From: Zancudomyces culisetae HAW-14-8
Lineage: Eukaryota > Fungi > Kickxellomycota
Length of the DNA stretch: 64,000 nucleotides
Direction: 5' to 3'
Assembly: GCA_052426225.1 (NCBI GenBank)
Contig: JBNJNM010000009.1
Location: forward strand, 186,001 to 250,000
How positions within the stretch are numbered: position 1 is the first letter of the stretch; every line of letters starts with the position of its first letter. Under the pieces are notes generated by a model. The model was not told the origin of the DNA. It ran no database searches and worked only from the letters and a program-made list of their open reading frames with translations. The position numbers and the translations under genes were made by a program. Below are positions 34,849 through 58,545 of the stretch, piece after piece.

Positions 34849-34947
34849 ATAATAACATCTAGAATTACAATATTTAAATGTGCATTTATCCACACATTTG
34901 AGTTTGGATAAATTTGTAGCCAGTATAGTCAAAAAAAACTAAAAAAG

Positions 34948-35020
34948 TGATCCAGCCAGGACTCGAACCTGGAATCTCTTGATTCGTAGTCAAGCGCCTT
35001 ATCCATTGGGCCACAGGACC
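34948..35020 (-). tRNA. tRNA-Arg(ACG)
   Basis: GGTCCTGTGGCCCAATGGATAAGGCGCTTGACTACGAATCAAGAGATTCCAGGTTCGAGTCCTGGCTGGATCA; cloverleaf with A and B boxes; T-run terminator follows. Confidence 0.97.
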
Positions 35021-35029
35021 TGTTGTCGC

Positions 35030-38000
35030 TGTCGTATAATAAAGAAATTTTATTTATACCTAATGTAAAAACAATATAATTTGTAACTCTAAGTAAGTAT
35101 TATCCTTGATAACTAATACCACTTAAAGATTAACTTGTACTGATATATTGAGTGATTAGAATCTAATATTTATTAATGTGAACCACAAAATCTGATAGAT
35201 AAAACTCTCACAAAAACTCTACCAAACCTTAAATAAAAACTAATTACGATTAAAGGGATTCAATTTTCATTGTTTTTCCTTTACGTAATTTTAGCCAATA
35301 AAACCTATCTAAAATAACTTTATAAAATTGAACTAAAAAATATACTAAAATAAACAAAACTAAACTAAAACATAGTACTATTGTACTATACGACAGCACT
35401 CCCCCTTTAGGCGATAATGCCCTCATTATTTTGAGCCTGTTTAAAGGTAAGTAACTTAGGTCGAAGTCGATTTGAAATTTCGGGAATCATAAATTTAGAT
35501 TCATGGTACTTCTTTAGCAAGTCTCCGTTGACTAAATCTCTATTTCCGAACTGATCTGAGATTAAGTAAGCCCCCTTAGTAAACCTTTTCATAACTGTAT
35601 ATGGGCCTTCCCATAAACTTTCAAGCTTTCCTCTTTCATACTCTACTAACTTTAACACTTTTTCTCCAACTTGAAATTTTGTAAATTTAACGGTTTTATT
35701 ATATCTTACTTTTTCAGATTCTTTTGCTGCTACAGCTTTGCGAACCCCGATTTTTCTTATTTGCGGTAAGTTACTCTTCATTAGCTCCAATCTACTTTTA
35801 ACTTGTTCAACTTCATCTTCAATTACACCATTAGATTTCCAAGTCGAGGGAATGCACATTTCGGTTCCGTACATCATCTCGGCGGGTGTATAACCAGTAC
35901 TCTTGCTCTCCATAGTTCTCATGATGAGTAACACCTTCCACAGGTAACGATCCCAATTATTTTTGTCTTTCCTACATATCTTCTGTAACAAATTTACTAA
36001 CGTCTTGTTCAATCTTTCACACTGTCCGTTGCTCTGCGGACGGTATGAAGTGGTAGGACTGTGGTCCAGCTGTAACCAGTTGAATACCTCGGTAGTAACG
36101 TTGCTGACAAAGCTCGAACCCCTATCTGTTATTATCTTCTGTGGTACACCGTAGTAAGTAACGATATTGTTTATTATAAAGTCTACTATAGTTTCACTTA
36201 ACAAGTTGTCTACGGGAATGGCTATCGGCCATTTCGTGCAATAATCTATAGCTGTTAGAATATAACGATTTCCTGACTCTGAAATAGGATTGATAGGACC
36301 GATAGCGTCCATACCGAATATTTCGAACGGCTTGACTGCATGCACTGGTACCAACGGGTGTTTACGACTTCTTCCATCCTTGAAAACTTGACAAACATGA
36401 CACCGCTTAACATAGTCCACTACCTGCTTGTACAATCCTTTAGCATAATGATTTCTGCTTACTCTTACCCAAGTGTTTTCGATACCCTCGTGTGTATCGT
36501 CGTGAACCTTCTTGATCATATCTATACTCTCTTCAGCCGTCAAAACTTCTTTTAATTGTCCCTTAACCCACCTGTATATTTTGCCATCCACCTGCTTGTA
36601 TGACTTAGATTTTTTCTTTATTTTTTCAGCTAACTCTTCTGAAACGTCTTGTGGCAGTGTTCCATCTAATAAAAATTGCCTAACTAAATTTTCTTCGTTT
36701 ACCCAAATGTTGTAGACTTCAATTGATTCTTCCTCAGTTGTTTCTATCAGACTACTTCGAGATAAATGGTCAGCAGGATTGACCTTCCCTGGTATATGCT
36801 CTATATCGAATTCGTAACTTCTAAGAAACATAGCCCATCTAGCTAGCCTTCCACTTAATTCTTCGCCGTTAAACATATTTAATAATGCTTTATGATCGGT
36901 TTTTATTACAAACTTCCTACCATATAAATAAAACTTAAACTTTTTAACGGCCCAGACAACCGCCAACCCCTCCAAGTGACTGATCGAATAATTTTTCTCT
37001 GCATTACTGGTTGTTCTACTTGCATACTCCACTGGTCTTTCTTTTCCTTCAATAACTTGTGATAGTATTGCTCCAACTCCACTAACTGCAGCGTCCGTCG
37101 TAACCACAAAAGAATAATCCCAATTTGGGTGCGCAAGCACTGGGGCTTCCGTCATCGCTTTTTTCAACTCTAAAAATGCTTCTTCTTGAGATTTTCCCCA
37201 GTTCCACTTTATTCCTTTCTTTAATAACGCAGTTAGTGGGTTAGCTATTATAGCATATTTTTCAATAAACTTACGATAATAACCTGTCATCCCCAAAAAT
37301 GACTGAACTTCTTTTATGCATGTCGGTGACTTTAACTTTGAAATGGCTTCAATTTTTGTTGAACTAGTTGCAATACCTTCACCCGAAATAACATGACCCA
37401 AATAATCAATTTCTGTTAACCCTATATTGCATTTATCTTTATGCAACTGTATCTGGCCTTGTTTTAATAATTCTAAAACTTCCTTAAGATCTTCTACATG
37501 ACTGCTTGCACTTTTTGAAAAGACGATTATGTCGTCAACAAAAACAACTGCCTTCTTCCATAGAACTTTTTTCAACACAGTTTCCATTGTTCTTTGGAAA
37601 GTGGAAGGGCTATTTGTCAAACCGAAAGGCATGACGTTATAGTGGTAACTCCCCCCTCCCGGCAACGCGAATGACGTCTTTTCTCGGTCTTCTTCTGACA
37701 TTTTTATTTGCCAAAAGCCGCTGAGTGCATCTAAAGTAGTAAAGATGCACGCACCAGCCAAGGCCATAAACAAATCCTGAATAATCGGTAGTGGGTATGA
37801 ATCTTTGACTGTAACTGCGTTTAACTTCCTATAATCTGCGCAGATGCGCAGTTTACCGTTTTTCTTCTGGACAACCACCACCGGCGAGCACCACTCGGAG
37901 TTACTAGGTGCAATTACATTTTGCTCTAACATCCTATCTATTTCTTTTCCTACTTCTTCTTGTAGACGAAACGGTATCCTGTACGGTCTTTGCTTAATTG

Positions 38001-40110
38001 GCCTGTTATCCGTGAGTACTATCCTGTGCTCGGCTACATTTGTTTGCTTTAACTTGTCGATATCATCTACAAATAATTCGTTATAGTCCTGGACTAAGGC
38101 CTCTAAACCTGCTACACCATCACCTTGTATTCCTGTTGGTGATTCCGTGAAAAAATATAAATCCCAGGTTTCCTCTACAGTATGTGCTTCTTTGGTAGTA
38201 ACTAGTGGTGTTACCACTTCTGCTCTATCCACAGGTAATCTTAGTTCTGGCACTGCTAGATTTAGACTGGCTTTATGTTTTAAAAGCCAATCCATACCTA
38301 ATATTATTGTTGGTGACATATTTCCCAACACCACCAATGATGCTACGAACTCAATTTTACTAATCATAATTGGTACACCTGACACCACACCTAGAGTTTC
38401 ATGACGTTTCCCGTCCGCTGTTATAATAACGTGCGAACTCTTCATGTTAGGCTCCAAACCAATCTTGTTCAAAGCACCTGTAGTAATCACAGAGCATGCC
38501 GCCCCTGTGTCTACCACCGCTTTCCACTGTAACTGGTAAATCTCAACCGTCATACTACAGTTTGTAGTAGCTTTTTCCTGGATTCTTATCTCGTTTAGGG
38601 CGGTCTGCGGTGAAACTTCAACTATGTTTTTCCAATCCTGTGCAATTTTTTCCGAATTTTGAAGTAATTGAATCATGCTAATTTTTGGATAGACTTTCTC
38701 CAACTCTTCCCTCAAATTGAACTTTTTCACTCTATCAATCGTTCCTGACTCCGGTTGGGTGACTCTCTCCGCCCGAAGCTCCTGTGCGTCCATGTCTCCC
38801 GTATTTCTAATCTTAGCTGGTCTTCCAACTCGACCAGCCGCATCCGTTGCTTTTCTTTTTTCTACCATAAGTACTTCGTCTACTTCAGTAGGTTCAGTAC
38901 CTATGGATAAAAAATTGACTTTCTTTTCCTCGTGCTCCTTTTGAAACCGTGGACATTCAAACTTCCGGTGACCTTTCTCATGACAATAATAACACTCCCA
39001 TGTGCTTGCACGTTCCACCTTTGCTTGACTTCCCCACTTTTTAGTTGAAGCAACCGTTTGATCTAACTTTTCCAAGAGGCTGACACTAAGCTCTTGAAAG
39101 GTTTTGAGAAACTCTCCAAACTGCCCAGCTTCCGTAGTCAATTCTTTTACCGACTTGCCTGACCGGGTAGCAGCGTTCTTAGTAGTTGGCTTACTACTCT
39201 TAATTGCTGCCTGTATATCCCTCCTACAATTTGTACTTTGTTCCAACTTAGCCACTAACTTAAGTACCGCTTCTCTATCTAAACCTTCCTTATCTGAAAG
39301 TCTTTCCCTAATATCATCTGAGAACGTACTAACCAGTGAACCAAGTTTAGTCACCTCTTCCTTGATTCCTACTTGTTTCCATAACTTTTCCAATTCCATT
39401 TCTAGCTCCTCCAGACTTTCAAACTCTGCTCGTTTGATTGTTCCAAGTCTGGTCCATGCTCCACTAGTAGAAAACACTGTACTATATTTCTTTTTGAACT
39501 CCTTAGTATATATTTCCCACGACGTGAAACTATTCTTGTTCCTCTTATACCAGATTGTTTCAGACTTGCCTAGCCACAACTTAACTAACCCGACCCAATC
39601 CTCAGGGTCCCACTTGTTAATCTTCGCAATTAGTTGAAAGTCCTCAAGCCAGTCCTCGGCGTTTATTCCTTTCCCACTTTCGAATATAGTGACTTTGTCC
39701 ATGATTCAATTAGTATCGATGTAGATTCCGACAGAAGGCACCACTGTCGTATAATAAAGAAATTTTATTTATACCTAATGTAAAAACAATATAATTTGTA
39801 ACTCTAAGTAAGTATTATCCTTGATAACTAATACCACTTAAAGATTAACTTGTACTGATATATTGAGTGATTAGAATCTAATATTTATTAATGTGAACCA
39901 CAAAATCTGATAGATAAAACTCTCACAAAAACTCTACCAAACCTTAAATAAAAACTAATTACGATTAAAGGGATTCAATTTTCATTGTTTTTCCTTTACG
40001 TAATTTTAGCCAATAAAACCTATCTAAAATAACTTTATAAAATTGAACTAAAAAATATACTAAAATAAACAAAACTAAACTAAAACATAGTACTATTGTA
40101 CTATACGACA
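35030..40110 (-). mobile_element. Full-length Ty3/gypsy LTR retrotransposon A, apparently intact
   Basis: 366-bp LTRs at 35030-35395 and 39745-40110, identical by eye; TSD TCGC; PBS TGGTGCCTTCTGTCGGAATC; PPT AAAGGGGGAGTGC. Confidence 0.97.
35407..39702 (-). CDS. Single-ORF Gag-Pol polyprotein of element A (Gag, CCHC, PR, RT, RH, IN; no chromodomain)
   Basis: CYYCHEKGHRKFEC, VDTGA, MPFGL, FVDD, TTDAA, HHCC + DDE integrase, WEGPY. Confidence 0.95.
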   Translation of the reverse strand: MDKVTIFESGKGINAEDWLEDFQLIAKINKWDPEDWVGLVKLWLGKSETIWYKRNKNSFTSWEIYTKEFKKKYSTVFSTSGAWTRLGTIKRAEFESLEELEMELEKLWKQVGIKEEVTKLGSLVSTFSDDIRERLSDKEGLDREAVLKLVAKLEQSTNCRRDIQAAIKSSKPTTKNAATRSGKSVKELTTEAGQFGEFLKTFQELSVSLLEKLDQTVASTKKWGSQAKVERASTWECYYCHEKGHRKFECPRFQKEHEEKKVNFLSIGTEPTEVDEVLMVEKRKATDAAGRVGRPAKIRNTGDMDAQELRAERVTQPESGTIDRVKKFNLREELEKVYPKISMIQLLQNSEKIAQDWKNIVEVSPQTALNEIRIQEKATTNCSMTVEIYQLQWKAVVDTGAACSVITTGALNKIGLEPNMKSSHVIITADGKRHETLGVVSGVPIMISKIEFVASLVVLGNMSPTIILGMDWLLKHKASLNLAVPELRLPVDRAEVVTPLVTTKEAHTVEETWDLYFFTESPTGIQGDGVAGLEALVQDYNELFVDDIDKLKQTNVAEHRIVLTDNRPIKQRPYRIPFRLQEEVGKEIDRMLEQNVIAPSNSEWCSPVVVVQKKNGKLRICADYRKLNAVTVKDSYPLPIIQDLFMALAGACIFTTLDALSGFWQIKMSEEDREKTSFALPGGGSYHYNVMPFGLTNSPSTFQRTMETVLKKVLWKKAVVFVDDIIVFSKSASSHVEDLKEVLELLKQGQIQLHKDKCNIGLTEIDYLGHVISGEGIATSSTKIEAISKLKSPTCIKEVQSFLGMTGYYRKFIEKYAIIANPLTALLKKGIKWNWGKSQEEAFLELKKAMTEAPVLAHPNWDYSFVVTTDAAVSGVGAILSQVIEGKERPVEYASRTTSNAEKNYSISHLEGLAVVWAVKKFKFYLYGRKFVIKTDHKALLNMFNGEELSGRLARWAMFLRSYEFDIEHIPGKVNPADHLSRSSLIETTEEESIEVYNIWVNEENLVRQFLLDGTLPQDVSEELAEKIKKKSKSYKQVDGKIYRWVKGQLKEVLTAEESIDMIKKVHDDTHEGIENTWVRVSRNHYAKGLYKQVVDYVKRCHVCQVFKDGRSRKHPLVPVHAVKPFEIFGMDAIGPINPISESGNRYILTAIDYCTKWPIAIPVDNLLSETIVDFIINNIVTYYGVPQKIITDRGSSFVSNVTTEVFNWLQLDHSPTTSYRPQSNGQCERLNKTLVNLLQKICRKDKNNWDRYLWKVLLIMRTMESKSTGYTPAEMMYGTEMCIPSTWKSNGVIEDEVEQVKSRLELMKSNLPQIRKIGVRKAVAAKESEKVRYNKTVKFTKFQVGEKVLKLVEYERGKLESLWEGPYTVMKRFTKGAYLISDQFGNRDLVNGDLLKKYHESKFMIPEISNRLRPKLLTFKQAQNNEGIIA

Positions 40111-40885
40111 TCGCATAATGTGAAGTATCACTACTTCCATTAGCGCTACCATCACGTGTTATACCGGTTCTGGTACGATCACTGATGGTTGATGCACTTC
40201 TATTGCGTAATGCAATGTGCATCGAGGGGTGCTCGGGTGAGCTAATACCCCTGTACAGTGTCGGTGAAATTGTACTCACCGACATTTCTTCCGGGTTCCT
40301 ACGGATCTGGAGTTGACGGACACTTTCTGTCAACTCACCAAGGGTGCGGGGACTTAATACCCCTGCATCCTGATCCATGCTGCTGCCCCTGCTCATGCTG
40401 GTAGAAGTGTGTGACTCCCTCCTGGAGTCACATTCGGTTCCAATCCAACTGTTTAAAAACATTATTGCTAATTTATCTTTTGGTTTATATTTGATTTTAT
40501 TTAATTATTTTATTATAGTATTCCGTATCGAGACATGGATGATGTTTTCATATGTCATCCATACGTCTCCTTAAATATACTATTCGAATGTTAAACCACT
40601 ATATAAAACTAAATACTAAAATATGACTATTGTTATACTATTATTAATAATTTGTTTGTTATTAATGATAAATGTAAAATGCATGGGATCATTTTACATT
40701 TTACATTCATCATTATTGAACTAGCTCAGTATGAAAAATTGATTGCATACTGAGCTCAAAATTATTTGAATTTATTTAAAAAAAGTAAACAAAAATGAAT
40801 TTGCATTTTCGCACTGAGTGTACCATTTTCAGGCACATCCACGTGCTATTGTACAAATTGTTAATAATGCGACACTGTGTATATT

Positions 40886-41730
40886 TTTCGCATGAGTGAG
40901 CAATTGTACACTTAAGTACAATTGTAGTACAAATTGAAGTACACTCATCGCAGAATGAAAATTAAATTTTTGTATCTGCATGAAATTCAATTTGGAAAAT
41001 GAGCGACACAGTATGAAATTAATTCTACATGCTGAGTCGACTCAATAATGATAGAATTTAGTATGAAAAATGTCTTCATACTAAATCCTAAATTAGATAA
41101 TAATTATTAGGTGTTCCCAACACCTAATTCAACATTCACTACATAAGTAAAATATGTAGAGGAAGTCAGTATAAAGTCATATAGTTCTTATAGTACATAA
41201 GTAATAGTAATTTAAACGTTTTGAAGATAGTAGCAGTTTAATAGTAATTTATATTTAAGGAACAAGAAGAGGGAAATGGAAAAACCTCATCCATGTTCTA
41301 CTCTACGGATTAAATAGTATATTTATTTAAACACAATAAAACAAACTTCAGAATATTATTGATAATAACCAATAACCAAAAATGAACTATTTCTTTTATA
41401 GTAAAAGCGAATCCAAGAGGGATTCAGAAACTAGCTCCAGTCTGAGTACGGCTAGTAGCATGGACCAAGAGACCGGGGTTCTAAGCCCTCGGACTCTTGG
41501 GGAGTTGACAGAAAGTGTCCGTCAACTCCAAATCCGTAGGAGCCCAGAACCAATGTCCGTGAGCAGCATCTCACCGACATTGTACAGGGGAAATAGCTCA
41601 CCCGAGCACCCCTATATGCACATCACACTACGGGGTAGTGGTGCATCCTCATCAAGTGGTCATACCCGAACTGGTATGACACGTGATGAACATAATAATC
41701 ATGATCTCCCGAATTATGATTATTACGACA
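40886..41730 (+). mobile_element. Solo LTR C (about 845 bp), diverged relative of family B
   Basis: Collinear with B2 from TTTCGCAT (B: TGTCGCAT) to TACGACA; homologous ORF. The left junction is degenerate. Confidence 0.75.
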
Positions 41731-41825
41731 TGTTGTATAATTACATGTTTAACGTCCTACTGAGTAATATAATTACCCAGTATTATACAGGACGGGACTT
41801 TTATTATTATATAATAGTACTATAA
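41382..41825 (+). CDS. LTR-encoded ORF of LTR C, reading out into LTR D1
   Basis: Core SSMDQETGVLSPRTLGELTESVRQLQIRRSPEPMSVSSISPTLYRG is conserved with family B, mainly through synonymous changes. Confidence 0.6.
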   Translation: MNYFFYSKSESKRDSETSSSLSTASSMDQETGVLSPRTLGELTESVRQLQIRRSPEPMSVSSISPTLYRGNSSPEHPYMHITLRGSGASSSSGHTRTGMTRDEHNNHDLPNYDYYDMLYNYMFNVLLSNIITQYYTGRDFYYYIIVL

Positions 41826-41953
41826 TTATTGTGGGAGAAAAAGACAATTTATTAATTAATTCAAAACTAGACTATTTAATGCATAAAATAATACTAATTA
41901 AATTAACCAATAAAATACAAGGAAATACAGGTATATAATTCCACTATATAACA
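41731..41953 (-). mobile_element. Solo LTR D1 (223 bp)
   Basis: TGTTGTATA...TATATAACA ends; same length as and highly similar to 47740-47962 and the inverted 50489-50711; followed by GTAT. Confidence 0.88.
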
Positions 41954-42374
41954 GTATTTGTAATATTATTTTAAATATGTTTGCCTTTTTAGGGGCTTTG
42001 TACTCAACTCCGAACTCTATCGCACTTGTATAGTTTTTATCCTACACCCTTGCTAATAGTTCGTTTTCTGAAGTTAGTACAGTCGTAATTTTTGTATATC
42101 TTATTTTTGTTTTTCTTCTTCTTTTGTTCTTCAAAACTGTGTATAAATTATATATATCTTTTGTTATCTCTAAAACTAATTATAAAACTTTTCCTGATAA
42201 CGACTAACCTGTTATCAAGGATAGAAATTGGATAAAACCCTCCATAGGGAGAAAAGTCCAATCTCCAATGAAATAAATATGATAAAATAAATATGATAAA
42301 CTAAATATGATAAATAAACTGCCAATCAAAGCTAGAAGGTATGAACTATCATTAATTATATGACAGTTACCCCC

Positions 42375-45300
42375 CTACCAGATTGGACTTATTCCTGAAT
42401 TAGTCTTGAAACGATACAACTTAGTTTTCAGTGGACCTGACACCTCTGGGATCATGTATCGACTGTGCTGATATGCCTTTAGTAAGTCCCCATTGATTAA
42501 GTCCCGATTACCAACATTATCTGAAATAATATAAGCGCCTTTGGATAATACATTCTCAACTTTTAGGGGCCCTCCCAGACTTCTTCTAGCTTACTAACGG
42601 TCTGTTCTACCCGTTTCAATACCAGATCTCCTGTCTTGAACGCTGATACTTTTACCGTCTTATTATAAACCTCCTTATCCTTTTCCTTAGCCGCTATATT
42701 GTTAGTAGCACTCGCTGTTCGCATCTCTGGTAAATCAGTAGTTATGGCTCTAATTCGCTCCTGAATAGCGAGGTCTAAATCGTCTGCGTCAGGTGGGGGT
42801 GCCCACACACTAGGTGTAACGATCTGCATTCCGTAGAGTAATTCTGATGGACTGAATTTGGTCGACTTATTCCTCATAGTTCGGATGGCCAATAGGGCCT
42901 TCCAAATATACTTGTCCCACTGTTCTTTATCGGCCCTGCATTGTCTCACCAAAGCGTTTTTAAGCGTTTGGTTCAGTCTCTCCACTTGCCCATTGGACTG
43001 TGGACGATATGGAGTTGTGGGTGTATGCCTAATCCCTAAGTATTTGTACACCTGCTCTGCTAGATCGCTAACGAATCCAGATCCCCGATCCGTGATAATC
43101 TGGTTTGGAACGCCAAAAACTTGCACTATATGTGTTAATATAAAACTTATTATGGTCTCTGTTTTAATATTTGGTACAGCGGCCGCCACCGGCCACTTGG
43201 TGAAATAGTCTATTCCAGTTAGTATAAATCGGTTGCCTGACTCACTAATCGGATTGATTGGTCCGATAGCATCTAGGCCGAATATTCCAAACGGTTTTTG
43301 AGCAAATATTGGATTCAAGTTGTTTCTCCTAGTCCTTCCTCCCCGGAACCGTTGGCACGTTTCGCATTCATTGACTACTTTCTTCACTGTTTCATATAAT
43401 CCTTCGCCTGTAAATTTCTCCTTAGCCTTTATCCATGTGTTTTCGATTCCTAGATGTGCTTCTTCATGAATCTTTTGTATAGTTTCTTCTATATTCTTTT
43501 CATGAAGTACCTCCTTCACTTGACCTTTGATTATACGACTTAGCTTATCATTCCTGATCACGTACTTCTTTGCCTTGTTTCTTAACTTCATCCTAAAATT
43601 ATCATCGGCACCTCGAGGATACTCATGCGTTTTTAAATAGTTAGTTATAGCAGAATAGTATAAGAAATCCAATGACATTATATCCAATAGTTCAGGCTTA
43701 TCTATTTCGTTTCCTCCAGGTAATCTGGATAGGGCATCGGCCGGGTTCTTCTTGCCAGGGCAGTGCTCGATAGTATACTCATATGTCCTTAGTATCATCG
43801 CCCACCTGGCGACTCGTCCTGTGATATCCTTACCATTAAACAACTGTCGGAGTGATTTATGATCAGTCCTAATTACAAAATGTTTTCCCCATAAATACTG
43901 TCTCAGCTTCTTAACAGCCCACACCACGGTTAGGCCTTCCAAGTGTGCTACTGAGTAATTTCGTTCATGCGGATTTAGTATTCTGCTTAGGTAACAAATG
44001 GGTTTCTCACCATCATCAAAAGTTTGTGAGAGAATGGCGCCTATCCCAACCACCGACGCATCTGTTGTCACCACAAACTCCTTCATCCAGTCCGGATGAG
44101 CTAATACCGGAGCCATACTCAGTTTCAATTTTAGATCTTCAACTGCCTTTTGTTGTTCCTCACCCCAGTTCCAATGGGTGTTTTTCTTCAATAGCTTCAA
44201 TAATGGTGACACAACCCTCGCATAGTTTTCTACAAACTTGCGGTAATAGCCCGTGAGTCCAAGAAAGGACTGTAACTCCTTTACATTATTGGGAATGCTT
44301 GCAGTTTGTATTGCCTTAATTTTATCTGTACTAGTTTCGATTCCTTCTCCAGAGACTGTGTGTCCTAAATAAGTTATGCTGCGCATACCTAGCCTACACT
44401 TATCTGCGTGCAACTGAATCTTGTGTTTTCTTAGCAATTCGAGAACCTCCCTTACATCGACTATATGCTGATCAATAGTTCTTGAATACACCACAATGTC
44501 GTCAATGAAGACAACCGTGGTCTTCCACAGCACTGGGGCTAGAGCCTGCTCCATCATTCGCTGGAAGGAAGCAGGACTGTTGGTGAGCCCGAATGGCATC
44601 ACGTTATAACAGTATGTGCCACTCCCAGGAATAGCAAATGCAGTCTTGCTACGGTCCTCTGATGCCATGGGTATCTGCCAAAACCCACTGAGCGCATCAA
44701 AGGAACTGAATACCGTAGCGCCCGCCAAAGCCATGAATATATCCTCTATGGTAGGTAATGGGTAGGAGTCTTTTCGCGTGATTTGATTAAGCTTCCTGTA
44801 GTCGGCACAGATGCGCAACCGACCATCCTTCTTCCATACGGTCACAACAGGAGAGCACCATTCAGAAGTACATGGTGATATCACTCCGTTGTTTTCCATG
44901 ACACGCAGTGTCAAGATCTGGAGTCTGGAAAGTTATATTTATTATTATTAAAGTTTATTGTATGAATGTATACAAGATACTAGATACTGAATCCAAGACA
45001 GGAAAATTGTACCCTTTTTATACTTTTTTCCAGCCTTGGTTTTTGAACAAAATCACTATGAAAACTGCGGAATAGCTAAATATGCAAGCTAAAGTAAAAC
45101 ATGTTTGATTACTAATCTAATTGGATTAGTAATCAAACAAAATTCAAACTCGAATGCTAATAAAACTAAACATGTGAAAATTATTACGTAAGAAAAATTA
45201 AGAAATATGTGAATTTTCGGTAATGTTCTAGAATGTTGGGGAACATTCTAAACATTACTGCGGAATAAAATCAGATGATTCTAGAACGTTTTCGAACATG

Positions 45301-49081: not shown

Positions 49082-49085
49082 GTAT

Positions 49086-49338: not shown

Positions 49339-49341
49339 TAT

Positions 49342-49713: not shown

Positions 49714-49717
49714 GTAT

Positions 49718-50479
49718 TGTCGCATTATTAACAATTTGTACAATACCACGTGGATGTGCCTGAAAATGGTACACTCAGTGCGAAAATGCAAATTCATTTT
49801 TGTTTACTTTTTTTAAATAAAATAATTTTGAGCTCAGTATGCAATCAATTTTTCATACTGAGCTAGTTCAATAATGATGAATGTAAAATGTAAAATGATC
49901 CCATGCATTTTACATTTATCATTAATAACAAACAAATTATTAATAATAGTATAACAATAGTCATATTTTAGTATTTAGTTTATATAAAGTGGTTTAAAAT
50001 TTGAATAGTATATTTAAGGAGACGTATGGATGACATATGAAAACATCATCCATGTCTCGATACGGAATACTATAATAAAATAATTAAATAAAATCAAATA
50101 TAAACCAAAAGATAAATTAGCAATAATGTTTTTAAACAGTTGGATTGGAACCGAATGTGACTCCAGGAGGGAGTCACACACTTCTACCAGCATGAGCAGG
50201 GGCAGCAGCATGGATCAGGATGCAGGGGTATTAAGTCCCCGCACCCTTGGTGAGTTGACAGAAAGTGTCCGTCAACTCCAGATCCGTAGGAGCCCGGAAG
50301 AAATGTCGGTGAGTACAATTTCACCGACACTGTACTGGGGTATTAGCTCACCCGAGCACCCCTCGATGCACATTGCATTACGCAATAGAAGTGCATCAAC
50401 CATCAGTGATCGTACCAGAACCGGTATAACACGTGATGGTAGCGCTAATGGAAGTAGTGATACTTCACATTATGCGACA
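49718..50479 (+). mobile_element. Solo LTR B2 (762 bp, inverted relative to B1/B3), non-matching flanks
   Basis: Reverse-complement copy of B1/B3; left flank GTAT, right flank ACAA. Confidence 0.9.
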
Positions 50480-50539
50480 ACAAAAAATTGTTATATAGTA
50501 GAAATATATACCTGTATTTCCTTGTATTTTATTGGTTAA
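50126..50539 (+). CDS. LTR-encoded ORF of family B (118 codons inside the LTR, no stop before the LTR end)
   Basis: Also present at 40462-39965 (B1) and, split by J, in B3; synonymous bias relative to LTR C. Confidence 0.6.
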   Translation: MFLNSWIGTECDSRRESHTSTSMSRGSSMDQDAGVLSPRTLGELTESVRQLQIRRSPEEMSVSTISPTLYWGISSPEHPSMHIALRNRSASTISDRTRTGITRDGSANGSSDTSHYATTKNCYIVEIYTCISLYFIG

Positions 50540-50711
50540 TTTAAATTTTATTATTTTAAGCATTAAATAGTCTAGTTTTGAATTAATTAATAAATTGTCT
50601 TTTTCTCCCAAAATAATTATAGTCCTATTATATAATAATAAAAGTCCCGTCCTGTATAATACTGGGTAAATATATTACTCAGTAGGACGTTAAACGTGTA
50701 ATTATACAACA
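50489..50711 (+). mobile_element. Solo LTR D3 (223 bp, inverted)
   Basis: Reverse-complement copy of D1/D2; TSD AAAT. Confidence 0.88.
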
Positions 50712-50714
50712 AAA

Positions 50715-51716
50715 TGTTGTATGCAAAAGCATCAACTTAAATTTACCGCTTATATTGCTGCAAAATAGCAGAGAAATCAATTTTGAAATAATTGTTTCCT
50801 GCGCAATTCAATTTAGAGTACAAAAATTATGACCATGTCATAAATTTTTGTCAGCTTTACAGCCAATTTAATAGTACAAATCGATTTAAATTTTAGTCGA
50901 ATCGATTTTATACTTTATTAGTGGATTTATTTTTAATCAATTTTATTAGTAAATTATTAGTATAAATTGAAAAATTTGTAAATCCGACCAAAACCACACT
51001 AAAAGTAAAAATAAACATATATAGAGAGGCGTAATACTATTTTTTTAGTGTAAGGAAAGGGCCATTTTGGCTATATTTTCCAGGTTTTGGGAGGAATTCT
51101 TTTAAATAAAATTATTTTTACCAAAAATTGTGGAAATTGTCCAGTTGTGTTCTTTCCGAGGGGGTTTTATAGATAGTGGTTAACTGGCTAGAAATGGTAA
51201 ATCCTATGTCAGTAATAACCACCCTTCTAGGGAACCGTGATTGATATTAGTGGAAGTTTTTTGGGAAAATCCTATTGGACTAGTACTAAAAAATGAAAAC
51301 GAATTCAACAAAAATGTCATATAGCGAAATGTTCGTGTTGGATTTTTTTCCGAAAGGTTTTTTTTATCCAATCGAACACTTATCAATAGTTTATTTTTAT
51401 TCTTAATTATTTAGTATTTAATATCAAAAAATGGCACAAAGGTGCAGAAAAATAACAACAGATATAATTAGTTTTTTGAATCTAACTTTTTTTACATAAT
51501 CAATAACTATTAGTTTTATTCTTATTACCTAATAGCACTATCGTAAATAAACAAATCAAGATTAATAGTATAAGTATCTAAGTATAAATATAATAATTAA
51601 AACATAAACAAGCATACACGGTTAAGATACTAGCTACACAACCGGAACCAGAAGTAGCTGAATTAAACAGCAGGCTACTCAAACGTACTGATCAGATAGT
51701 ACATAAAAATTTAACA
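50715..51716. mobile_element. Probable solo LTR H (about 1002 bp)
   Basis: TGTT...AACA ends, AAAA on both sides (50711-14, 51717-20), hairpin-rich; single copy in the window, so boundaries are inferred. Confidence 0.55.
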
Positions 51717-52355
51717 AAAATATGTGTCGCATAATGTGAAGTATCACTACTTCCATTAGCGCTACCATCACGTGTTATACCGGTTCTGGTACGATCACTG
51801 ATGGTTGATGCACTTCTATTGCGTAATGCAATGTGCATCGAGGGGTGCTCGGGTGAGCTAATACCCCAGTACAGTGTCGGTGAAATTGTACTCACCGACA
51901 TTTCTTCCGGGCTCCTACGGATCTGGAGTTGACGGACACTTTCTGTCAACTCACCAAGGGTGCGGGGACTTAATACCCCTGCATCCTGATCCATGCTGCT
52001 GCCCCTGCTCATGCTGGTAGAAGTGTGTGACTCCCTCCTGGAGTCACATTCGGTTCCAATCCAACTGTCAAGAATATATTAAGGTAACTTTATTATTATA
52101 AGCTTAAATTACTATGGACTATGAAATATGATTTTATCGCTGAGTTGCGATAAAATCTTTTAGCTAGGGTTATATATGAAATTTACTATAACAATTAATG
52201 GTGTAGTATCTTATATAATTTATATGTGGTTATTTATAACCAATACTATGTGTCTGAAATTAACTCCATAATATTGTGAGACAAATATAATCTTATTTAT
52301 GTGGGGAAAGTGTGGAGATATGTCATTCTGACATTACTCTCCTTTAATGACTTTC

Positions 52356-55300
52356 TCAACTTGTTTGTGTGGGTTTTGGTTTGTTAGGGTACTGTTTATG
52401 AAATCTTTTTGTTAGGATAGGTGCATGCACATCTTCCTCATATTCCCATGATCTTTCTTCCGGGGGATACCCTTCCCAATCGATTAGGTATTTAAGTTTA
52501 CCATGTATTCTTTTACTATCTAGTATTCTGTTTACTATGTATTCTGGTATGCCGTTTAAGATTTCAATTTGTGGTGGGTTTAGTTTAGTCTTTCTTATGG
52601 AGTCTTTAATATATGGTTTAAGTAATGAGATATGAAATACAGGGTGTATTTTAAGTGAATAAGGCAATTTTAATTTGGCAGCAACAGGGTTTATCATGGA
52701 TATTATTTCATATGGTCCCATAAATAGATTATCTAATTTCTTAGACGGTCTTGTTGAATGTATGTGTTTTTGAGATAACCACACTTTCATTCCTGGTTTG
52801 TATTCATCATAATCTGTTCTTTTTTTATCCGCTTGGTATTTATAATTATTTTTAGCTTTCTCTAGTTGATTTTTTAATACTTCTTGTGTTTCTTTAATCT
52901 GAATAATTAGGTCTTGCGCACTAGGTAAATTAGAGTTGGATATTGAGTTTGTATTTAAATTTGGATGGAACCCGTAATTAGCATAAAACGGGCTTAATTT
53001 AGTTGAACTATGGTATGAATTATTATATGCAAATTCAGCAAAGGTCAGCAGTTGTGACCAGTTATCCTGTTGATAATTTATAAAACATCTTAGGTATTGT
53101 TCTAATATTAAGTTAATTCTCTCTGTTTGCCCGTCACTTTGAGGATGATATGCTGTTGAAAGGTTTATTTTAACATTCAAGAGTTTAAAGAAGTCTTTCC
53201 AGAATCGTGATACGAACTGAGATCCACGATCAGATACAATTGAATTAGGCATTCCGTGTATCCTAAAGATGTTGTCTATAAATAATTTAGCCGTTTCTAT
53301 AGATGTTGGAAGTTTTTTACATGCTATAAAATGCGCCATTTTAGTTAGGCGATCTACTATAACCAAAATAGTAGTATTTCCTAAAGATTTAGGCAGGTCT
53401 GTTATAAAATCAAGTGAAACTGATTCCCATGGTTTTCCCGGTGTATCTAGTGGTATTAGAAATCCTTTTGGTTTTGATGTTTGGTATTTATTTCTGTTGC
53501 ATGTTTCGCATGTTTTAATATAATTTTCTACTGTTTCTCTCAACTTTGGCCACCAATATTTCCTCGATATGCATTCGTATGTTTTAGTTGTGCCAAAATG
53601 TCCTGCTAGAGGTGTATCATGAAATTCTTCAAGTACTTGTTTTCTCACGTTTTCTGGTACAAATATTTTATTTTCATGATTTAAGATTTGACCGTTTTCT
53701 AGCCTTAGTTTCAGTTCTTTATTTTCAAGTAGTATTTTATTAATGTTTTCAGTTGTGTATCCTAGATTAATTTCCTTATCAATTGTGTTGGTTTGAATAG
53801 CTCCTATTATTGCTTTTGGGGTCATTATAGGGTCAGTATTATATTGTGATATTTTATCTTTGGGTTCTTCTCTTCTGGTCAAGGCGTCTGCTTTTCCATT
53901 CTTAGCTCCTGGTCTATACATAAGATTAATATCAAATCTGGATAGAAATAGAGACCATCTGGCCTGTCTTTGGTTTAAAATTTTAGCATCTTTAAAATAT
54001 TCTAAATTTTTATGGTCTGTCATAATTGTAACAGGATGAGATGCGCCCTCCAGTAAGTGTCTCCATTGTTCTAAAGAATCTTTAACTGCCAACAGTTCTT
54101 TGTCAAATATATGATAATTCTTTTCCGAGTCGTTTAGTGTTCTCGAGTAATAGCAGCATGGGTGTAATATGTTGTCGTGTTTTTGAGATAGTACGGCACC
54201 TATCGCATAATTTGACGCGTCACATTCGAGTATAAAAGGTTTATCCGGTATTGGGTGTTTTAATATAGGTGCGGACGTAAATTTAGCTTTTAATTCGTCA
54301 AAAGCACATTGATGTACTTGTGTCCATATGAATTGTGCGTTCTTTTTCAATAAACTTGTAATTGGACTTATGATCTTGGAAAAATTTTCTATAAATCGTC
54401 GATAGAAATTTGAAAATCCTAGGAATATTTGTATCTGTTTTACTGTGGATGGTGGTTTCCAGTTTTGTATAGTTTCAATTCTTTTATTGTCCATTTGTAG
54501 TCCTTCGTTAGAAACTATATATCCTAAAAATTCTACTTGTTTTTGATTAAATTCACATTTCTCCAATTTTACGTATAGGTTGTTTTGGATAAGTCTATTT
54601 AGGACTAGCCTTACATGGTTAATATGTTCGTTTTTGTTTTTTGAAAATATCAAAATATCGTCCAAATAAACTACCATGAATATATTAATAAAATCCTTAA
54701 AAATATCGTTCACAAAATGTTGGAATGTTGCTGGAGCGTTCGCCAACCCAAATGGCATTACATTATATTGGAAGTGACCGAATTGGGTTCGAAAGGCCGT
54801 TTTCCACTCATCGCCTGTTTTAATTCTTACGAGGTTATAAGCGCCTCGTAAATCTAATTTAGTGAATATTTCAGCGCCTTGTACTCGCTCTAATAATTCA
54901 TTTATTAGTGGTAGTGGATATCGATTTTTTCGAGTAATTAGATTTAATTTTCTGTAATCTACTACTAGTCGAAGGGATCCATCTTTTTTGGATGTAAAAA
55001 ATACGGGTGCACCAGCTTCTGAAGTGGAGTTTTCGATAAAACCTTTAGAAAGATTGTCTTGGATATATTCATTTAGCGTTTTCGATTCTTTTGGAGATAG
55101 TGAGTATATGGGTCTGTAAGGGGGGCTTGAATTAGGTAATAATTCTATTGGGCAATCATATGGCCTATGCGGTGGTAATTTGTTTGCTAGTTGTTTGTCA
55201 AATGCTGTTTTTAAGTCCATATATTCGTTTGGAATTTGAGGTAATATTTCTTTTTCGAATTCTATAGATGGGTTTTGAATAATCCCGATTATGTGGGCTA

Positions 55301-55811
55301 TATTAAATCTGTTTTTCTTTAGTGGTGACAGTAACTCTAATTCATCTGTATAATATTTTCTTTTTTGAGGTACTATTGGTATTGCTGGAGGTGGAGTAGT
55401 TAGTCTAATGGATTGACTACACATTTTATCTTTTTCATAGTTATCTGTATACATTTTTTCTTCCCAAATTGGGTAATATTCGTATATCATTGGTACTTCA
55501 TTCTGGTATTCTTCACTATTTTCTATATCTTCCATGTCCACATCTTCCATATCTACATTTGGATTTTTTGTATTGGTTAATGTGGGTTCCTCACTATTAT
55601 AATCTATAGTTTTGGGATGTATAGTTTCTTTCTCGGTTTCTTCTTGATGACTAATCTCTTGATTATTAGTATTAATTATTATAGTTTCCTTCTCATTTGG
55701 TTTATTGTCTATAATTTCAATGTCTCTAGTAGTGTCATTCGTATCTGCTTTTGCTGTGGTTTTCATTTCTATGATGTCCAGTTCAGGATTTTCATTATTT
55801 TTTGTGTCCAT
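52356..55811 (-). CDS. Element J Pol (RT, RNase H, integrase, chromodomain)
   Basis: LPPHRPYDCPI, YLDD, ECDAS, GPY, chromodomain 'EYIVNRILDSK.....KYLIDWEGYPPEERSWE'. Confidence 0.93.
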   Translation of the reverse strand: MDTKNNENPELDIIEMKTTAKADTNDTTRDIEIIDNKPNEKETIIINTNNQEISHQEETEKETIHPKTIDYNSEEPTLTNTKNPNVDMEDVDMEDIENSEEYQNEVPMIYEYYPIWEEKMYTDNYEKDKMCSQSIRLTTPPPAIPIVPQKRKYYTDELELLSPLKKNRFNIAHIIGIIQNPSIEFEKEILPQIPNEYMDLKTAFDKQLANKLPPHRPYDCPIELLPNSSPPYRPIYSLSPKESKTLNEYIQDNLSKGFIENSTSEAGAPVFFTSKKDGSLRLVVDYRKLNLITRKNRYPLPLINELLERVQGAEIFTKLDLRGAYNLVRIKTGDEWKTAFRTQFGHFQYNVMPFGLANAPATFQHFVNDIFKDFINIFMVVYLDDILIFSKNKNEHINHVRLVLNRLIQNNLYVKLEKCEFNQKQVEFLGYIVSNEGLQMDNKRIETIQNWKPPSTVKQIQIFLGFSNFYRRFIENFSKIISPITSLLKKNAQFIWTQVHQCAFDELKAKFTSAPILKHPIPDKPFILECDASNYAIGAVLSQKHDNILHPCCYYSRTLNDSEKNYHIFDKELLAVKDSLEQWRHLLEGASHPVTIMTDHKNLEYFKDAKILNQRQARWSLFLSRFDINLMYRPGAKNGKADALTRREEPKDKISQYNTDPIMTPKAIIGAIQTNTIDKEINLGYTTENINKILLENKELKLRLENGQILNHENKIFVPENVRKQVLEEFHDTPLAGHFGTTKTYECISRKYWWPKLRETVENYIKTCETCNRNKYQTSKPKGFLIPLDTPGKPWESVSLDFITDLPKSLGNTTILVIVDRLTKMAHFIACKKLPTSIETAKLFIDNIFRIHGMPNSIVSDRGSQFVSRFWKDFFKLLNVKINLSTAYHPQSDGQTERINLILEQYLRCFINYQQDNWSQLLTFAEFAYNNSYHSSTKLSPFYANYGFHPNLNTNSISNSNLPSAQDLIIQIKETQEVLKNQLEKAKNNYKYQADKKRTDYDEYKPGMKVWLSQKHIHSTRPSKKLDNLFMGPYEIISMINPVAAKLKLPYSLKIHPVFHISLLKPYIKDSIRKTKLNPPQIEILNGIPEYIVNRILDSKRIHGKLKYLIDWEGYPPEERSWEYEEDVHAPILTKRFHKQYPNKPKPTQTS

Positions 55812-56959
55812 AGTAGTAAAATTTTGTTCGTAGTTTCATAGTCTGTAGTTTCATAGTCTGTAGTTTTATGGTCTGTAGTTTTATTGTCTGTAGTTTTATA
55901 ATCTGTAGTTTTATAATCTGTGGTGTTATTTTCTGTTGTATAAGTAGCTGTAGTTGTATTTTTATTTAATACGTATTTGGAGGTTGTTTTTTCAGTTGGA
56001 TTATTTATAGTACTTTTCAGGTTGCTTGATGTATGAGGGGAAATGCCATTGTCTTTAACATTTTCAATTTTGTTCTTAAAGTTATTTTTGTTTCTATTTT
56101 CAGTTGAATTGACTTTAGTGTTATCTTTGGGTAAATAGATATTTTGTTTAGTATTTAAATTTTCTAAGTTAGTCTCAGTATCCTTGTTTACTGTTTCATT
56201 ATAAGTTGGTATTGAGATGTTGTTATTATTTATAAATATTTCTTGAGTGTTTGGTGAATAGTATTTTTTTTGTAACTTTTCCTGTTCTTTTATAGTTTTT
56301 TTGTTGTTATATTGTTTTGTTATTTTTATGTTAGAGTTTACGATTTTGTCATTTTTATATAAATTGTTATTTTTTAATAAGCAGTATCTTTTACAATATA
56401 TATCATTGAATAAAATAGTAGAATCTCGCCAGTCAATAAGGGGATTATGTTCGTAGAGCCAAGGTAGTCCCAAGATTATGTTTGCGTGTTTAATAGGCAA
56501 AAGATCAAAAATGATAAATTCATGGTGGTTATTAATAGTTAAAGATAATACTTGAGTTTCAGTAGTTATAGGTCCCGAAGGGTTTTCAGAACCATCGATA
56601 AATTCAACTTTCGTAGGTATTTGTTTAATATAATTTTGGATCCTATTGTTTTTGGCAAACTGACTATCCATGAAGTATCCTGTGGCTCCTGTATCAACAA
56701 TTGCATTTGTTTTTAATTTAAATTTACCTATACTTAAAGTGATATTGATTATTAGTTGTTGAGATGGTTGACTGGTGACTGTGGTATATATAGTGTGAAC
56801 TAGATTTGAATATAATAATTTGTTAGGAGAGAGTTGTTTATGTTGTTTCAGATCTACCACTCCTCCTAGGTCTGAAACTGTTGGTTTGATTGTCTTGCCT
56901 TCTTTATCTTTTCCGGACAATGTTGTGCCAAATGGCCCTGACTTCCACAATAGAAGCAT
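55769..56959 (-). CDS. Element J protease ORF plus N/T/K-rich spacer
   Basis: AIVDTGATGYFMD and IILGLPWL..HNPLIDW; -1 frame relative to gag. Confidence 0.85.
   Translation of the reverse strand: MLLLWKSGPFGTTLSGKDKEGKTIKPTVSDLGGVVDLKQHKQLSPNKLLYSNLVHTIYTTVTSQPSQQLIINITLSIGKFKLKTNAIVDTGATGYFMDSQFAKNNRIQNYIKQIPTKVEFIDGSENPSGPITTETQVLSLTINNHHEFIIFDLLPIKHANIILGLPWLYEHNPLIDWRDSTILFNDIYCKRYCLLKNNNLYKNDKIVNSNIKITKQYNNKKTIKEQEKLQKKYYSPNTQEIFINNNNISIPTYNETVNKDTETNLENLNTKQNIYLPKDNTKVNSTENRNKNNFKNKIENVKDNGISPHTSSNLKSTINNPTEKTTSKYVLNKNTTTATYTTENNTTDYKTTDYKTTDNKTTDHKTTDYETTDYETTNKILLLWTQKIMKILNWTS
55831..55922 (-). repeat. 15-bp tandem repeat (TTDY/N/H-K/E x6) in element J
   Basis: tagttt(c/t)atagtctg-type units. 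Confidence 0.85.
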
Positions 56960-57708
56960 AATCCAAGTTTTAGTCTCCTATCTCTTTCTTCCGGTTGTAC
57001 TACCTTTTTATGTTGAGTTATTGTTGGATAATAGTTGTTTTTATTTCTATTATCTCTTTTCTCTTTTCTCATGATGATATTGATATCTGCTTTAATTGCT
57101 GCTTCAATGAATAATTCTAATGTATTAATATGTCCTAATTGAGTTAAAGCATCTATAACTTCTTCATTAAGGCCTGCTTCGAACTGGAAAATTAATGGGG
57201 GATCATTCCAAGATAGGTCCATAGCTATTCTTCTGAAATTTGAAGCATATGTTGCTACTGAATTGGTACCTTGTTTCAGTTTCCTAATTGCAATATCTGC
57301 TGTCTTATATCTTTGGGGGTCGTCAAACATTTTCGCCATTTCAGTAATAAATAGAGAATAATTCAATAATAATTGGTTATTTTTCTCTACTATTGGTGAT
57401 GCCCAATTCAGTGCATCATTTGTGAGAAGCGAAATAATAAGCCCGACTTTTGATATATCAGTTGAATACTGTTGTGGGTTCATTAAAAATAGTAATTGGC
57501 ACTGATTGATAAATCCGCGGTACTCTGTTCTATTTCCATTAAATTTTTCTGGTAGAGCAATCTTAGTAGGTGTAATAGTTAGGTTTTGTTTCAAACTTGC
57601 ATTTTCTAATCTTAGCTTATTAAGTTCCTCGGTTATCACATTAAAATCTTGGTTGTCAATTATTGGAAGTTGTTCTTCCATTGCATCAGAGATGTCGCTG
57701 TTTGGCAT
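56866..57708 (-). CDS. Element J Gag
   Basis: 'LPEKFNGNR..YRGFINQC', 'LKQGTNSVATYA..F', zinc knuckle CFYCGSQGHLAQHC. Confidence 0.92.
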   Translation of the reverse strand: MPNSDISDAMEEQLPIIDNQDFNVITEELNKLRLENASLKQNLTITPTKIALPEKFNGNRTEYRGFINQCQLLFLMNPQQYSTDISKVGLIISLLTNDALNWASPIVEKNNQLLLNYSLFITEMAKMFDDPQRYKTADIAIRKLKQGTNSVATYASNFRRIAMDLSWNDPPLIFQFEAGLNEEVIDALTQLGHINTLELFIEAAIKADINIIMRKEKRDNRNKNNYYPTITQHKKVVQPEERDRRLKLGLCFYCGSQGHLAQHCPEKIKKARQSNQQFQT

Positions 57709-58463
57709 GGTGATGTAACTGTTCTTGATTTTAATAAAGTTAAGTTAATTACAAGCGATAAAATACTGTCAAGAATATATTAAGGTAACTTTATTATTAT
57801 AAGCTTAAATTACTATGGACTATGAAATATGATTTTATCGCTGAGTTGCGATAAAATCTTTTAGCTAGGGTTATATATGAAATTTACTATAACAATTAAT
57901 GGTGTAGTATCTTATATAATTTATATGTGGTTATTTATAACCAATACTATGTGTCTGAAATTAACTCCATAATATTGTGAGACAAATATAATCTTACTTA
58001 TGTGGGGAAAGTGTGGAGATATGTCATTCTGACACCAACTGTTTAAAAACATTATTGCTAATTTATCTTTTGATTTATATTTGATTTTATTTAATTATTT
58101 TATTATCGTATTCCGTATCGAGACATGGATGATGTTTTCATATGTCATCCATACGTCTCCTTAAATATACTATTCGAATGTTAAACCACTATATAAAAAC
58201 TAAATACTAAAATATGACTATTGTTATAATATTATTAATAATTTGTTTGTTATTAATGATAAATGTAAAATGCATGGGATCATTTTACATTTTACATTCA
58301 TCATTATTGAACTAGCTCAGTATGAAAAATTGATTGCATACTGAGCTCAAAATTATTTTATTTAAAAAAAGTAAACAAAAATGAATTTGCATTTTCGCAC
58401 TGAGTGTACCATTTTCAGGCACATCCACGTGGTATTGTACAAATTGTTAATAATGCGACATAT

Positions 58464-58545
58464 GTCAGTGTGTCCGAGCGGTTAAGGAGATAGACTTGAA
58501 ATCTATTGGGCTATGCCCGCACAGGTTCAAATCCTGTCGCTGACG
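58464..58545 (+). tRNA. tRNA-Ser(TGA)
   Basis: 82 nt; acceptor stem GTCAGTG/CGCTGAC, anticodon arm ATAGA-CTTGAAA-TCTAT, long variable arm GGGCTATGCCC. Confidence 0.96.

Follow-up and report, generated by a model that had tools for sequence, protein, structure and literature searches.

Retrotransposon insertions stacked immediately upstream of tRNA genes in Zancudomyces culisetae, a fungus of the mosquito gut

Why should nearly all of the DNA between two tRNA genes consist of retrotransposons and their solitary ends, and does the order in which these lie reflect the order in which they arrived? The question is raised by a locus in Zancudomyces culisetae HAW-14-8, a mosquito-gut fungus of the Harpellales (Zoopagomycota), which we read in a window of 64,000 nucleotides, positions C9:186001-250000 of an assembly that comprises 27.1 Mb in 25 contigs (here numbered with the prefix C). 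The locus is bounded on the left by a tRNA-Arg(ACG) gene on the minus strand (34947/8-35020, +1 at 35020; identified by ARAGORN and by Rfam RF00005 with 61 bits), and on the right by a close pair of genes on the plus strand for tRNA-Ser(UGA) (58464-58545, +1 at 58464) and tRNA-Gly(GCC) (58549-58619), also identified by ARAGORN and Rfam. Since these 2 anchors are divergent, the whole intervening stretch is located upstream of both. It consists of 23,443 bases, all but 60 of which (99.7%) fall within 14 long terminal repeat (LTR) units of the form TG...CA, joined by gaps of 0 to 11 bp. The boundaries of the units were determined by self-BLAST and direct reading. Four units are elements with internal sequence and the other 10 are solo LTRs, and together they represent 11 different LTR types of 223 to 845 bp. 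An original prediction, made from the sequence alone, had described the stretch as chronological stacks of insertions anchored at the 2 tRNA genes; the positions that it gave for the tRNA genes, the near-total packing and the collapse of most units to solo LTRs were all borne out. We consider it highly probable that many LTR families integrate about 3 to 14 nt upstream of tRNA genes in this fungus, and that they have piled up there into stacks that grow older outward.

The evidence from the locus itself comes from the target-site duplications (TSDs). Each unit was removed by a script together with one copy of its TSD, the youngest first, and the duplication flanking the D3 unit was confirmed by hand from the output. 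Once the units were peeled in stack order, the flanks matched for 12 of the 14, with TSDs of 3 to 5 bp. The fully peeled remainder consisted of the C at +1 of tRNA-Arg, TGT GTAT, the B2 unit, ACAAAAAAT, AT, and the G at +1 of tRNA-Ser.

On the Arg side, the residual native leader TGT (-1 to -3; 35021-35023) is followed by B1, a solo LTR of 762 to 766 bp (35024-40874, in pieces 35024-35029 and 40111-40874) that is interrupted by the full-length element A, a Ty3/gypsy retrotransposon of 5,081 bp on the minus strand (35030-40110). The TSD of A is TCGC, at -6 to -9, while that of B1 is CTGT, at -3 to +1, with copies at 35020-35023 and 40875-40878; its proximal copy is formed by the TGT leader and base 35020, and so takes in the first base of the tRNA. 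The next spacer, CTGT GTAT ATT (40875-40885), contains the distal copy of the B1 duplication, leader bases -4 to -7 and 3 additional bases, ATT. It is followed by C, a solo LTR of 845 bp (40886-41730) delimited by self-BLAST and a genome search, and by D1, a solo 223-bp LTR of the D family (41731-41953; TSD GTAT). Beyond the spacer GTAT plus T (41954-41958), the T of which is a copy of the first base of D2 that was duplicated in the TSD of E, lies E itself, a 5,778-bp Ty3/gypsy element on the minus strand that retains internal sequence (41959-47736; TSD TATT, -5 to -8). The spacer TAT (47737-47739) and the first T of D2 make up the right copy of that TSD. D2-int-I, on the minus strand, was inserted as a single unit (47740-49081; TSD GTAT) and is chimeric, with a D2 LTR (47740-47962), an internal part (47963-48526) and an I LTR that starts at 48527 and ends at 49081. 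Further out we found the spacer GTAT (49082-49085), the solo 253-bp LTR F (49086-49338; 3-bp TSD TAT), the spacer TAT (49339-49341), the solo 372-bp LTR G (49342-49713; TSD GTAT), the spacer GTAT (49714-49717) and B2, a 762-bp LTR (49718-50479) that is inverted relative to B1 and B3. These 3 outermost spacers, like the TAT at 47737-47739, were defined by direct reading and peeling.

On the Ser side, B2 is followed by ACAAAAAAT (50480-50488), which represents the distal portion of the leader native to tRNA-Ser and ends in one copy of the D3 duplication, AAAT (-6 to -3 of tRNA-Ser). Then come D3, a solo and inverted D LTR (50489-50711), the spacer AAA (50712-50714; direct reading), the solo 596-bp LTR H1 (50715-51310; TSD AAAA, the left copy of which takes in the last base of D3), a second spacer, AAAA (51311-51314; direct reading, genome search and peeling), the solo 402-bp LTR H2 (TGTCA...TTAACA; 51315-51716; TSD AAAA) and the spacer AAAA TATG (51717-51724; direct reading and peeling). 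The innermost unit is B3, a solo 762-bp LTR (51725-58460, in pieces 51725-52065 and 58035-58460) interrupted by J, a full-length chromovirus of 5,969 bp on the minus strand (52066-58034; 5-bp TSD CCAAC). The TSD of B3, TATG, spans -3 to +1 and includes the first base of tRNA-Ser, as the TSD of B1 does at tRNA-Arg. The native leader that remains next to the gene, TAT (58461-58463), was established by direct reading and peeling.

These boundaries and spacers reproduced the map in the original prediction, with two exceptions: the start of the I LTR was corrected to 48527, and H1 and H2 had been drawn as a single unit, H (50715-51716). In a genome search with H, more than 40 copies of H1 stopped at query position ~596 to 616, and 2 separate copies of H2 covered positions 593/597 to 1002. 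The AAAA at their junction is exactly the leader-derived spacer that stacking predicts. The predicted TSD offsets were likewise recovered for A, B1, D1, G, D2-int-I, E, F, B3, H and D3, with D1, G and D2-int-I all at -4 to -7; C lacked a clean TSD. The recurring GTAT and TAT spacers are, as had been proposed, leader bases of tRNA-Arg that were duplicated anew at each insertion.

To place the locus in the context of the genome, we selected the 63 best matches to RF00005, regardless of repeats, merged neighbouring genes into 54 loci and compared the 500 bp upstream of each with one another, with the window and with the loci of family B. One locus, a dense tRNA cluster on a 61-kb contig (C18:6010-6681), is probably organellar and was left out of the nuclear sample of 53; it contains 6 tRNA genes (Glu, Ile, Asp, Cys, Lys and Phe) within 650 bp. 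An LTR end supported by sibling copies was located at -4 to -15 in at least 27 of the 53 nuclear loci, and in these the gap between the terminal CA and +1 was 3 to 14 nt, with a median of 7. The link between LTRs and tRNA genes thus extends well beyond the window. Clusters of repeat ends numbered 37 between -15 and -1, 5 of which were alignments that ran through to -1 between duplicated loci, against 1 to 8 in each other 15-nt bin back to -450. About 9 further loci had an end of the form ...CGACA or ...AACA at the same place, with no sibling in the small repeat database. Because the database was small and such candidate ends were without siblings, 27 of 53 is a lower bound. The CGACA fragments near some tRNA genes were initially considered as LTR remnants; this was dropped, since they are probably native leader, as in tRNA-Ala (...GACACA). 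Among the 31 LTRs of family B, 12 adjoined a tRNA gene at 2 to 11 bp, with a mode of 3; the genes represented at least 10 anticodon types, and the LTRs lay in both orientations (7 versus 5). In 5 more, the LTR was the distant one of a B element, full-length or tandem, that adjoined a tRNA gene at its opposite end. With 12 matching TSDs in the window and 37 end clusters in the proximal bin against 1 to 8 elsewhere, the pattern is far beyond chance.

The other stacks reveal what is recognised at the target. At a second, paralogous tRNA-Arg(ACG) gene, at C6:1289829, the C at the gene boundary is followed outward by AGTTATC, a D-int-D element, TATCT, a solo E LTR, ATCT, a D LTR, TC and another LTR, here called K. 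The spacers in this stack are derived from its own leader, AGTTATC, and not from GTAT, with TSDs TATC and ATCT. In a third stack, at C23:300070, the spacers are 1 to 3 bp long, and a 712-bp LTR (K2) is located 9 nt from tRNA-Arg with the TSD ACAG, the left copy of which includes the last 3 bases of the adjacent F LTR. The TSDs of family B at tRNA genes all differed (TGTG, ACAG, AACA, TGTC, TATC, CAAC, ACTG and CTGT), and 3 of them spanned +1. In the window, the TSD of A falls inside the first 6 bases of B1. Because spacers follow their own leaders, the B duplications vary and A duplicated LTR sequence, it is position rather than sequence that defines the target. From coordinates alone, LTRs of different families were seen to adjoin one another with gaps of 0 to 11 bp at 15 or more additional junctions. 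No family order was consistent across the stacks, and B and D occurred in both young and old layers. Rfam scans of the flanks of family B and of the other scanned stack loci identified only tRNA genes; no 5S or U6 locus was examined.

The direction of growth can be read where a TSD takes in one or more end bases of the unit distal to it, since that neighbour must have been present first. By this reasoning E was inserted after D2 and H1 after D3 in the window, K2 after F in the stack on contig C23, and a D LTR (D') after K in the stack on contig C6. Together with the nesting of A within B1, the tRNA-proximal unit was the younger in 5 of 5 directional cases, and the opposite direction was not seen. 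Sequence identities pointed roughly the same way. The 5 proximal units on the Arg side all look young: the LTR pairs of A and E are identical, the best siblings of C and D1 score ~100% and that of B1 is 99.6% identical. The distal units look older, with nearest siblings at 97% for D2, ~99% for I and G, and 98.8% for B2.

Several observations weigh against a strict layer-by-layer history, or against an anchor at every insertion. E and D1 are not ordered by their TSDs, as both orders yield the present sequence. C had no matching flanking TSD on peeling, and the 3 bases ATT beside it lack an explanation. The flanks of B2 differed (GTAT versus ACAA). F, with a best sibling about one indel away (~99.6%), is located distal to the older-looking D2, and nearest-sibling identity gives only an upper bound on age, one that gene conversion blurs. 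Over 344 bp, B2 and B3 are 100% identical in their start halves (50136-50479 versus 51725-52068, inverted), while their other halves are 98.4% identical; the likely cause is gene conversion, or a recent exchange between these adjacent LTRs. J entered B3 at a site 426 bp from the tRNA and was therefore not a leader-site insertion. Elsewhere, an 8-kb cluster at C21:1446400-1454400 contains at least 12 different LTR units with joins of 0 to 5 bp, with no tRNA or other Rfam match in the fetched span; the anchor of this cluster lies further away or has been lost. A full-length B element at C2:5275-8944 has a clean TSD, TAGA, with neither a tRNA gene nor any other Rfam match within 1.5 kb, and is either an off-target insertion or located at an unrecognised RNA polymerase III (Pol III) gene. 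These points leave some room for a stack that is anchored at the tRNA genes and only roughly chronological, in which some units entered distally or at LTR ends and recombination, gene conversion and deletion reshuffled the layers. We regard this as unlikely, though as an alternative to be taken seriously: all directional cases run the same way, LTR ends throughout the sampled loci concentrate at -4 to -15 rather than further out, and the young-looking units on the Arg side are the proximal ones. The direction of the history, that each newcomer lies next to the tRNA, is thus well supported, and the strict chronology in the original prediction is not proven because of E and D1, C and B2. We also searched for the ancestral leader through the neighbouring gene for O-acetylhomoserine sulfhydrylase; the 21-kb orthologous loci in Smittium simulii and S. 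mucronatum contained no tRNA genes.

Three other explanations were considered. The elements might prefer a short motif such as GTAT or TATT, or the termini of other LTRs, and have nested in one another with the tRNA genes as bystanders. The GTAT or TAT at 7 junctions in the window, the many LTR-LTR junctions of 0 to 11 bp elsewhere and the cluster on contig C21, with no tRNA gene found within 8 kb, would fit such a preference, but the spacers of the other stacks match their own leaders (TATC/ATCT and ACAG), family B has different TSDs at different tRNA genes, and single LTRs adjoin tRNA genes of many anticodons at 3 to 14 nt, all of which makes it highly improbable. That repeat copies were joined in assembly is conceivable in a region that is 99.7% repeats, and confidence in the assembly of this locus rests on internal consistency; a mis-join would nevertheless not yield 12 TSDs that peel to 2 clean tRNA leaders, the same architecture recurs at independent loci, and contiguity is high, so that an artefact is the least probable of the explanations considered here. 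Finally, the stacks might serve as a host defence record, similar to an array of clustered regularly interspaced short palindromic repeats (CRISPR) or a cluster of PIWI-interacting RNAs, that provides small RNAs against the stacked families. The resemblance, which the original prediction had also drawn, lies at the level of structure: fragments of many active families are brought together beside a fixed anchor, comparable to the leader of a CRISPR array, their addition is probably polarised, and position would then encode relative age, as it does in such an array. It ends there. CRISPR arrays consist of repeats and unique spacers, whereas the stacks have no repeat-spacer units: they comprise 11 LTR types, the recurring 3- to 4-bp strings are TSDs, and the units are whole self-inserting parasites. 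No associated genes and no evidence of function were found; in the list of open reading frames (ORFs) for 30000-64000, those of at least 150 amino acids between the tRNA genes were only retrotransposon Gag-Pol and short overlapping frames, with no cas genes. As a by-product of site-specific integration accounts for the whole pattern, a defence record has very little probability.

The B2 unit forms the hinge between the 2 stacks. It ends at -8 of tRNA-Arg and at -12 of tRNA-Ser, both within the usual target window, and its flanks come from the Arg leader on one side and from the Ser leader on the other. B2 is probably a recombinant of 2 B insertions, one in each leader, with loss of the native intergenic DNA between them.

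The families that contribute to the stacks are diverse. A, E and J encode Pfam domains in the order RVP/Asp_protease, RVT_1, RT_RNaseH, Integrase_H2C2 and rve, which corresponds to protease, reverse transcriptase, RNase H and integrase (PR-RT-RH-IN). The LTRs of A are 366 bp long and 100% identical (367 aligned bp), and a single ORF of 1,431 amino acids covers Gag-PR-RT-RH-IN without a chromodomain. An exact look-up of the window's proteins in a sequence collection gave no entry. The polyprotein of A shares 99% identity with a protein of Z. culisetae, the next 9 best matches are from the same species, and another copy of A is located on contig LSSK01000280.1 of a draft assembly, not at the present locus. 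The best solved-structure match to its RT-RH-IN region is Ty3 (7q5b, E = 5e-82), the sole gypsy element among the matches listed. E has LTRs of 407 to 408 bp that are 100% identical (408 aligned bp) and also lacks a chromodomain; the Pol proteins of A and E are 53% identical, C-terminus included. We noted that the coding region of E is divided into 2 ORFs (637 and 783 amino acids) despite the identical LTRs, and that this copy is ~416 bp longer than most E copies, with an LTR-pair spacing of 5,371 bp versus ~4,955 bp (4,835 bp in one). J has LTRs of 269 to 270 bp that are 99.6% identical, an SH3_Tf2-1 domain and an integrase chromodomain, and is 31% identical to A.

The 762-bp LTR B belongs to an element of ~3.66 kb in which paired LTRs lie 2,900 bp apart. 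A tandem of 3 B LTRs, also 2,900 bp apart, was observed at C6:1371390-1377951, located 3 nt from tRNA-Thr(AGU) with the TSD ACTG. The C LTR is 78% identical to that of B. It had been taken for a degenerate copy, an interpretation that is ruled out by its ~100% match to the 843-bp LTRs of full-length elements of ~6.2 kb (pairs 5,347 to 5,348 bp apart); C is an intact, young-looking LTR. The full-length siblings align from its third base, and C begins with TT where the related B LTR has TG, which suggests that its terminal TG has been altered. G is the LTR of an element of ~5.3 kb and H1 of one of ~8.6 kb, whereas I was found only as solo copies, the one exception being the chimeric D2-int-I.

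The smallest elements are terminal-repeat retrotransposons in miniature (TRIMs). D is the LTR of a TRIM of ~1 kb with pairs 784 to 785 bp apart, the canonical D-int-D form of which is located at C6:1289909-1290915. The internal part of the copy in the window contains a primer-binding site (48509-48526) that matches the 3' end of tRNA-Arg plus CCA. It was noted that D-int elements occur at 2 different tRNA-Arg(ACG) genes, the same tRNA that the primer-binding site matches. D solo LTRs are also located beside other tRNA genes, so that this correspondence may be coincidental. F is the LTR of another TRIM, with pairs elsewhere spaced 734 bp. F is followed by G in the same relative orientation at 3 loci (C21:1529680-1530312, C13:1631077-1631708 and 49086-49713 of the window). 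The spacers differ among these loci (3, 5 and 4 bp). The pairs look like independent events, perhaps from 2 bursts near in time.

Two further observations concern the tRNA genes themselves. They often occur as head-to-tail pairs 1 to 6 nt apart, such as the Ser-Gly pair of this locus and the Ala-Lys and Thr-Thr pairs that recur at many loci, which suggests dicistronic tRNA transcription units. In addition, a repeat of ~420 to 430 bp is located ~60 to 100 bp downstream of both tRNA loci in the window (33994-34849 and 58683-59119). It forms an inverted pair beside tRNA-Arg, its copies are 69% to 75% identical, and it may represent a family whose targets lie downstream of tRNA genes.

The mechanism that we favour would be as follows. 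The integrators would be members of a non-chromodomain Ty3/gypsy clade, which would include A, E and the owners of the C, G and H1 LTRs, and the same narrow window of ~3 to 14 nt would be shared by non-autonomous LTR elements, namely the ~3.7-kb B and two TRIMs, D and F. The integrase may be recruited by a tether to the initiation complex of Pol III where transcription begins, a mechanism demonstrated for Ty3 and proposed for Tj1. Each newcomer would land between the tRNA and the previous insertion, re-duplicate 3 to 4 bases of the leader and sometimes one or more end bases of the adjacent LTR, and displace the older copies outward, where LTR-LTR recombination would reduce most of them to solo LTRs. 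The divergent Arg and Ser-Gly tRNA genes would each have been struck repeatedly, and recombination between a B LTR in one stack and a B LTR in the other probably deleted the intergenic DNA native to the locus, with B2 remaining as the hinge. Unoccupied leaders in our sample are rich in A and contain a CA near -9. If this CA marked the Pol III start, integration would occur where transcription begins, as it does for Ty3, and short leaders would account for the small distance to the mature tRNA.

We also consider, as a combination that is less likely than not when taken as a whole, that a Ty3/gypsy clade specific to Zoopagomycota acquired Pol III targeting independently of the ascomycete and dictyostelid cases and also mobilises non-autonomous LTR families; that the TSD can include +1, so that a terminal ...ACA of the LTR becomes the leader and start context of the pre-tRNA; and that stacks beside over half of all tRNA genes might amount to a genome-wide stratigraphy of transposon activity.

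The significance of the locus depends on how it compares with known systems. The original prediction could match no described case to an ordered multi-family stack so near the mature 5' end, but such closeness is not unprecedented. Tj1 of Schizosaccharomyces japonicus integrates 5 to 11 bp upstream of the mature 5' end (PMC4600332), the dictyostelid element NLTR-A integrates 2 to 6 bp upstream from the coding sequence of the mature tRNA (PMC5911963), and multi-family clusters linked to tRNA genes are known in S. japonicus (PMC5911963). Targeting upstream of tRNA genes has evolved independently in the compact genomes of dictyostelids (PMC5006619). The tRNA-targeting LTR elements in Table 1 of a review from 2018 come only from Saccharomyces, Schizosaccharomyces japonicus, Candida, Yarrowia and Dictyostelium (PMC5911963). 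In the papers searched, we found no report of tRNA-gene targeting in Harpellales, Smittium, Zancudomyces or other Zoopagomycota, and no description of ordered leader-duplicating LTR stacks, the Tj papers included; such stacks follow directly from site-specific integration. What is new here is tRNA targeting in a new fungal lineage by at least 10 LTR families, including riders that resemble TRIMs and large retrotransposon derivatives (LARDs), and its scale, with occupied genes making up about half of the tRNA sample, or more, and insertions down to 3 nt from the mature 5' end. The fungus offers a natural system for studying how often Pol III targeting evolves, which region of the integrase tethers it, and how tRNA genes tolerate a leader replaced by an LTR end. 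Provided that comparisons of isolates confirm the order, the stacks would also serve as a cheap relative clock of family activity.

The closest parallels are Tj1 and Ty3. The Tj families are Ty3/gypsy LTR elements, like those described here, and 10 of them cluster with tRNA genes, with the insertion distance of Tj1 resembling that in Z. culisetae. In contrast to the situation here, Tj1 is found in an ascomycete host, the Tj clusters are centromeric or telomeric, Tj1 has a chromodomain-type relationship to Tf1/Tf2 whereas A and E have no chromodomain, and insertions in the Tj1 assay were in one orientation only whereas family B inserts in both. Ty3 of S. cerevisiae is position-specific at the Pol III start of tRNA genes, as the insertions here probably are; it also inserts in both orientations, leaves solo (sigma) LTRs beside the genes and has an integrase without a chromodomain, all as here. 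It differs in its 5-bp TSD, compared with 4 bp and occasionally 3 bp for tRNA-site insertions in Z. culisetae, in its distance of ~16 to 17 nt from the mature end rather than 3 to 14 nt, and in being a single family rather than at least 10 LTR types; binding to TFIIIB has been demonstrated for Ty3 and would apply here by analogy. The amoebozoan elements are more distant: DGLT-A inserts 13 to 33 bp upstream, and NLTR-A is a non-LTR element. The Z. culisetae case is thus Ty3/Tj1-like targeting of Pol III sites, a known form of tRNA targeting rather than a new kind of system, and only the 3-nt mode of family B, with TSDs that contain +1, is at the extreme of the closeness known.

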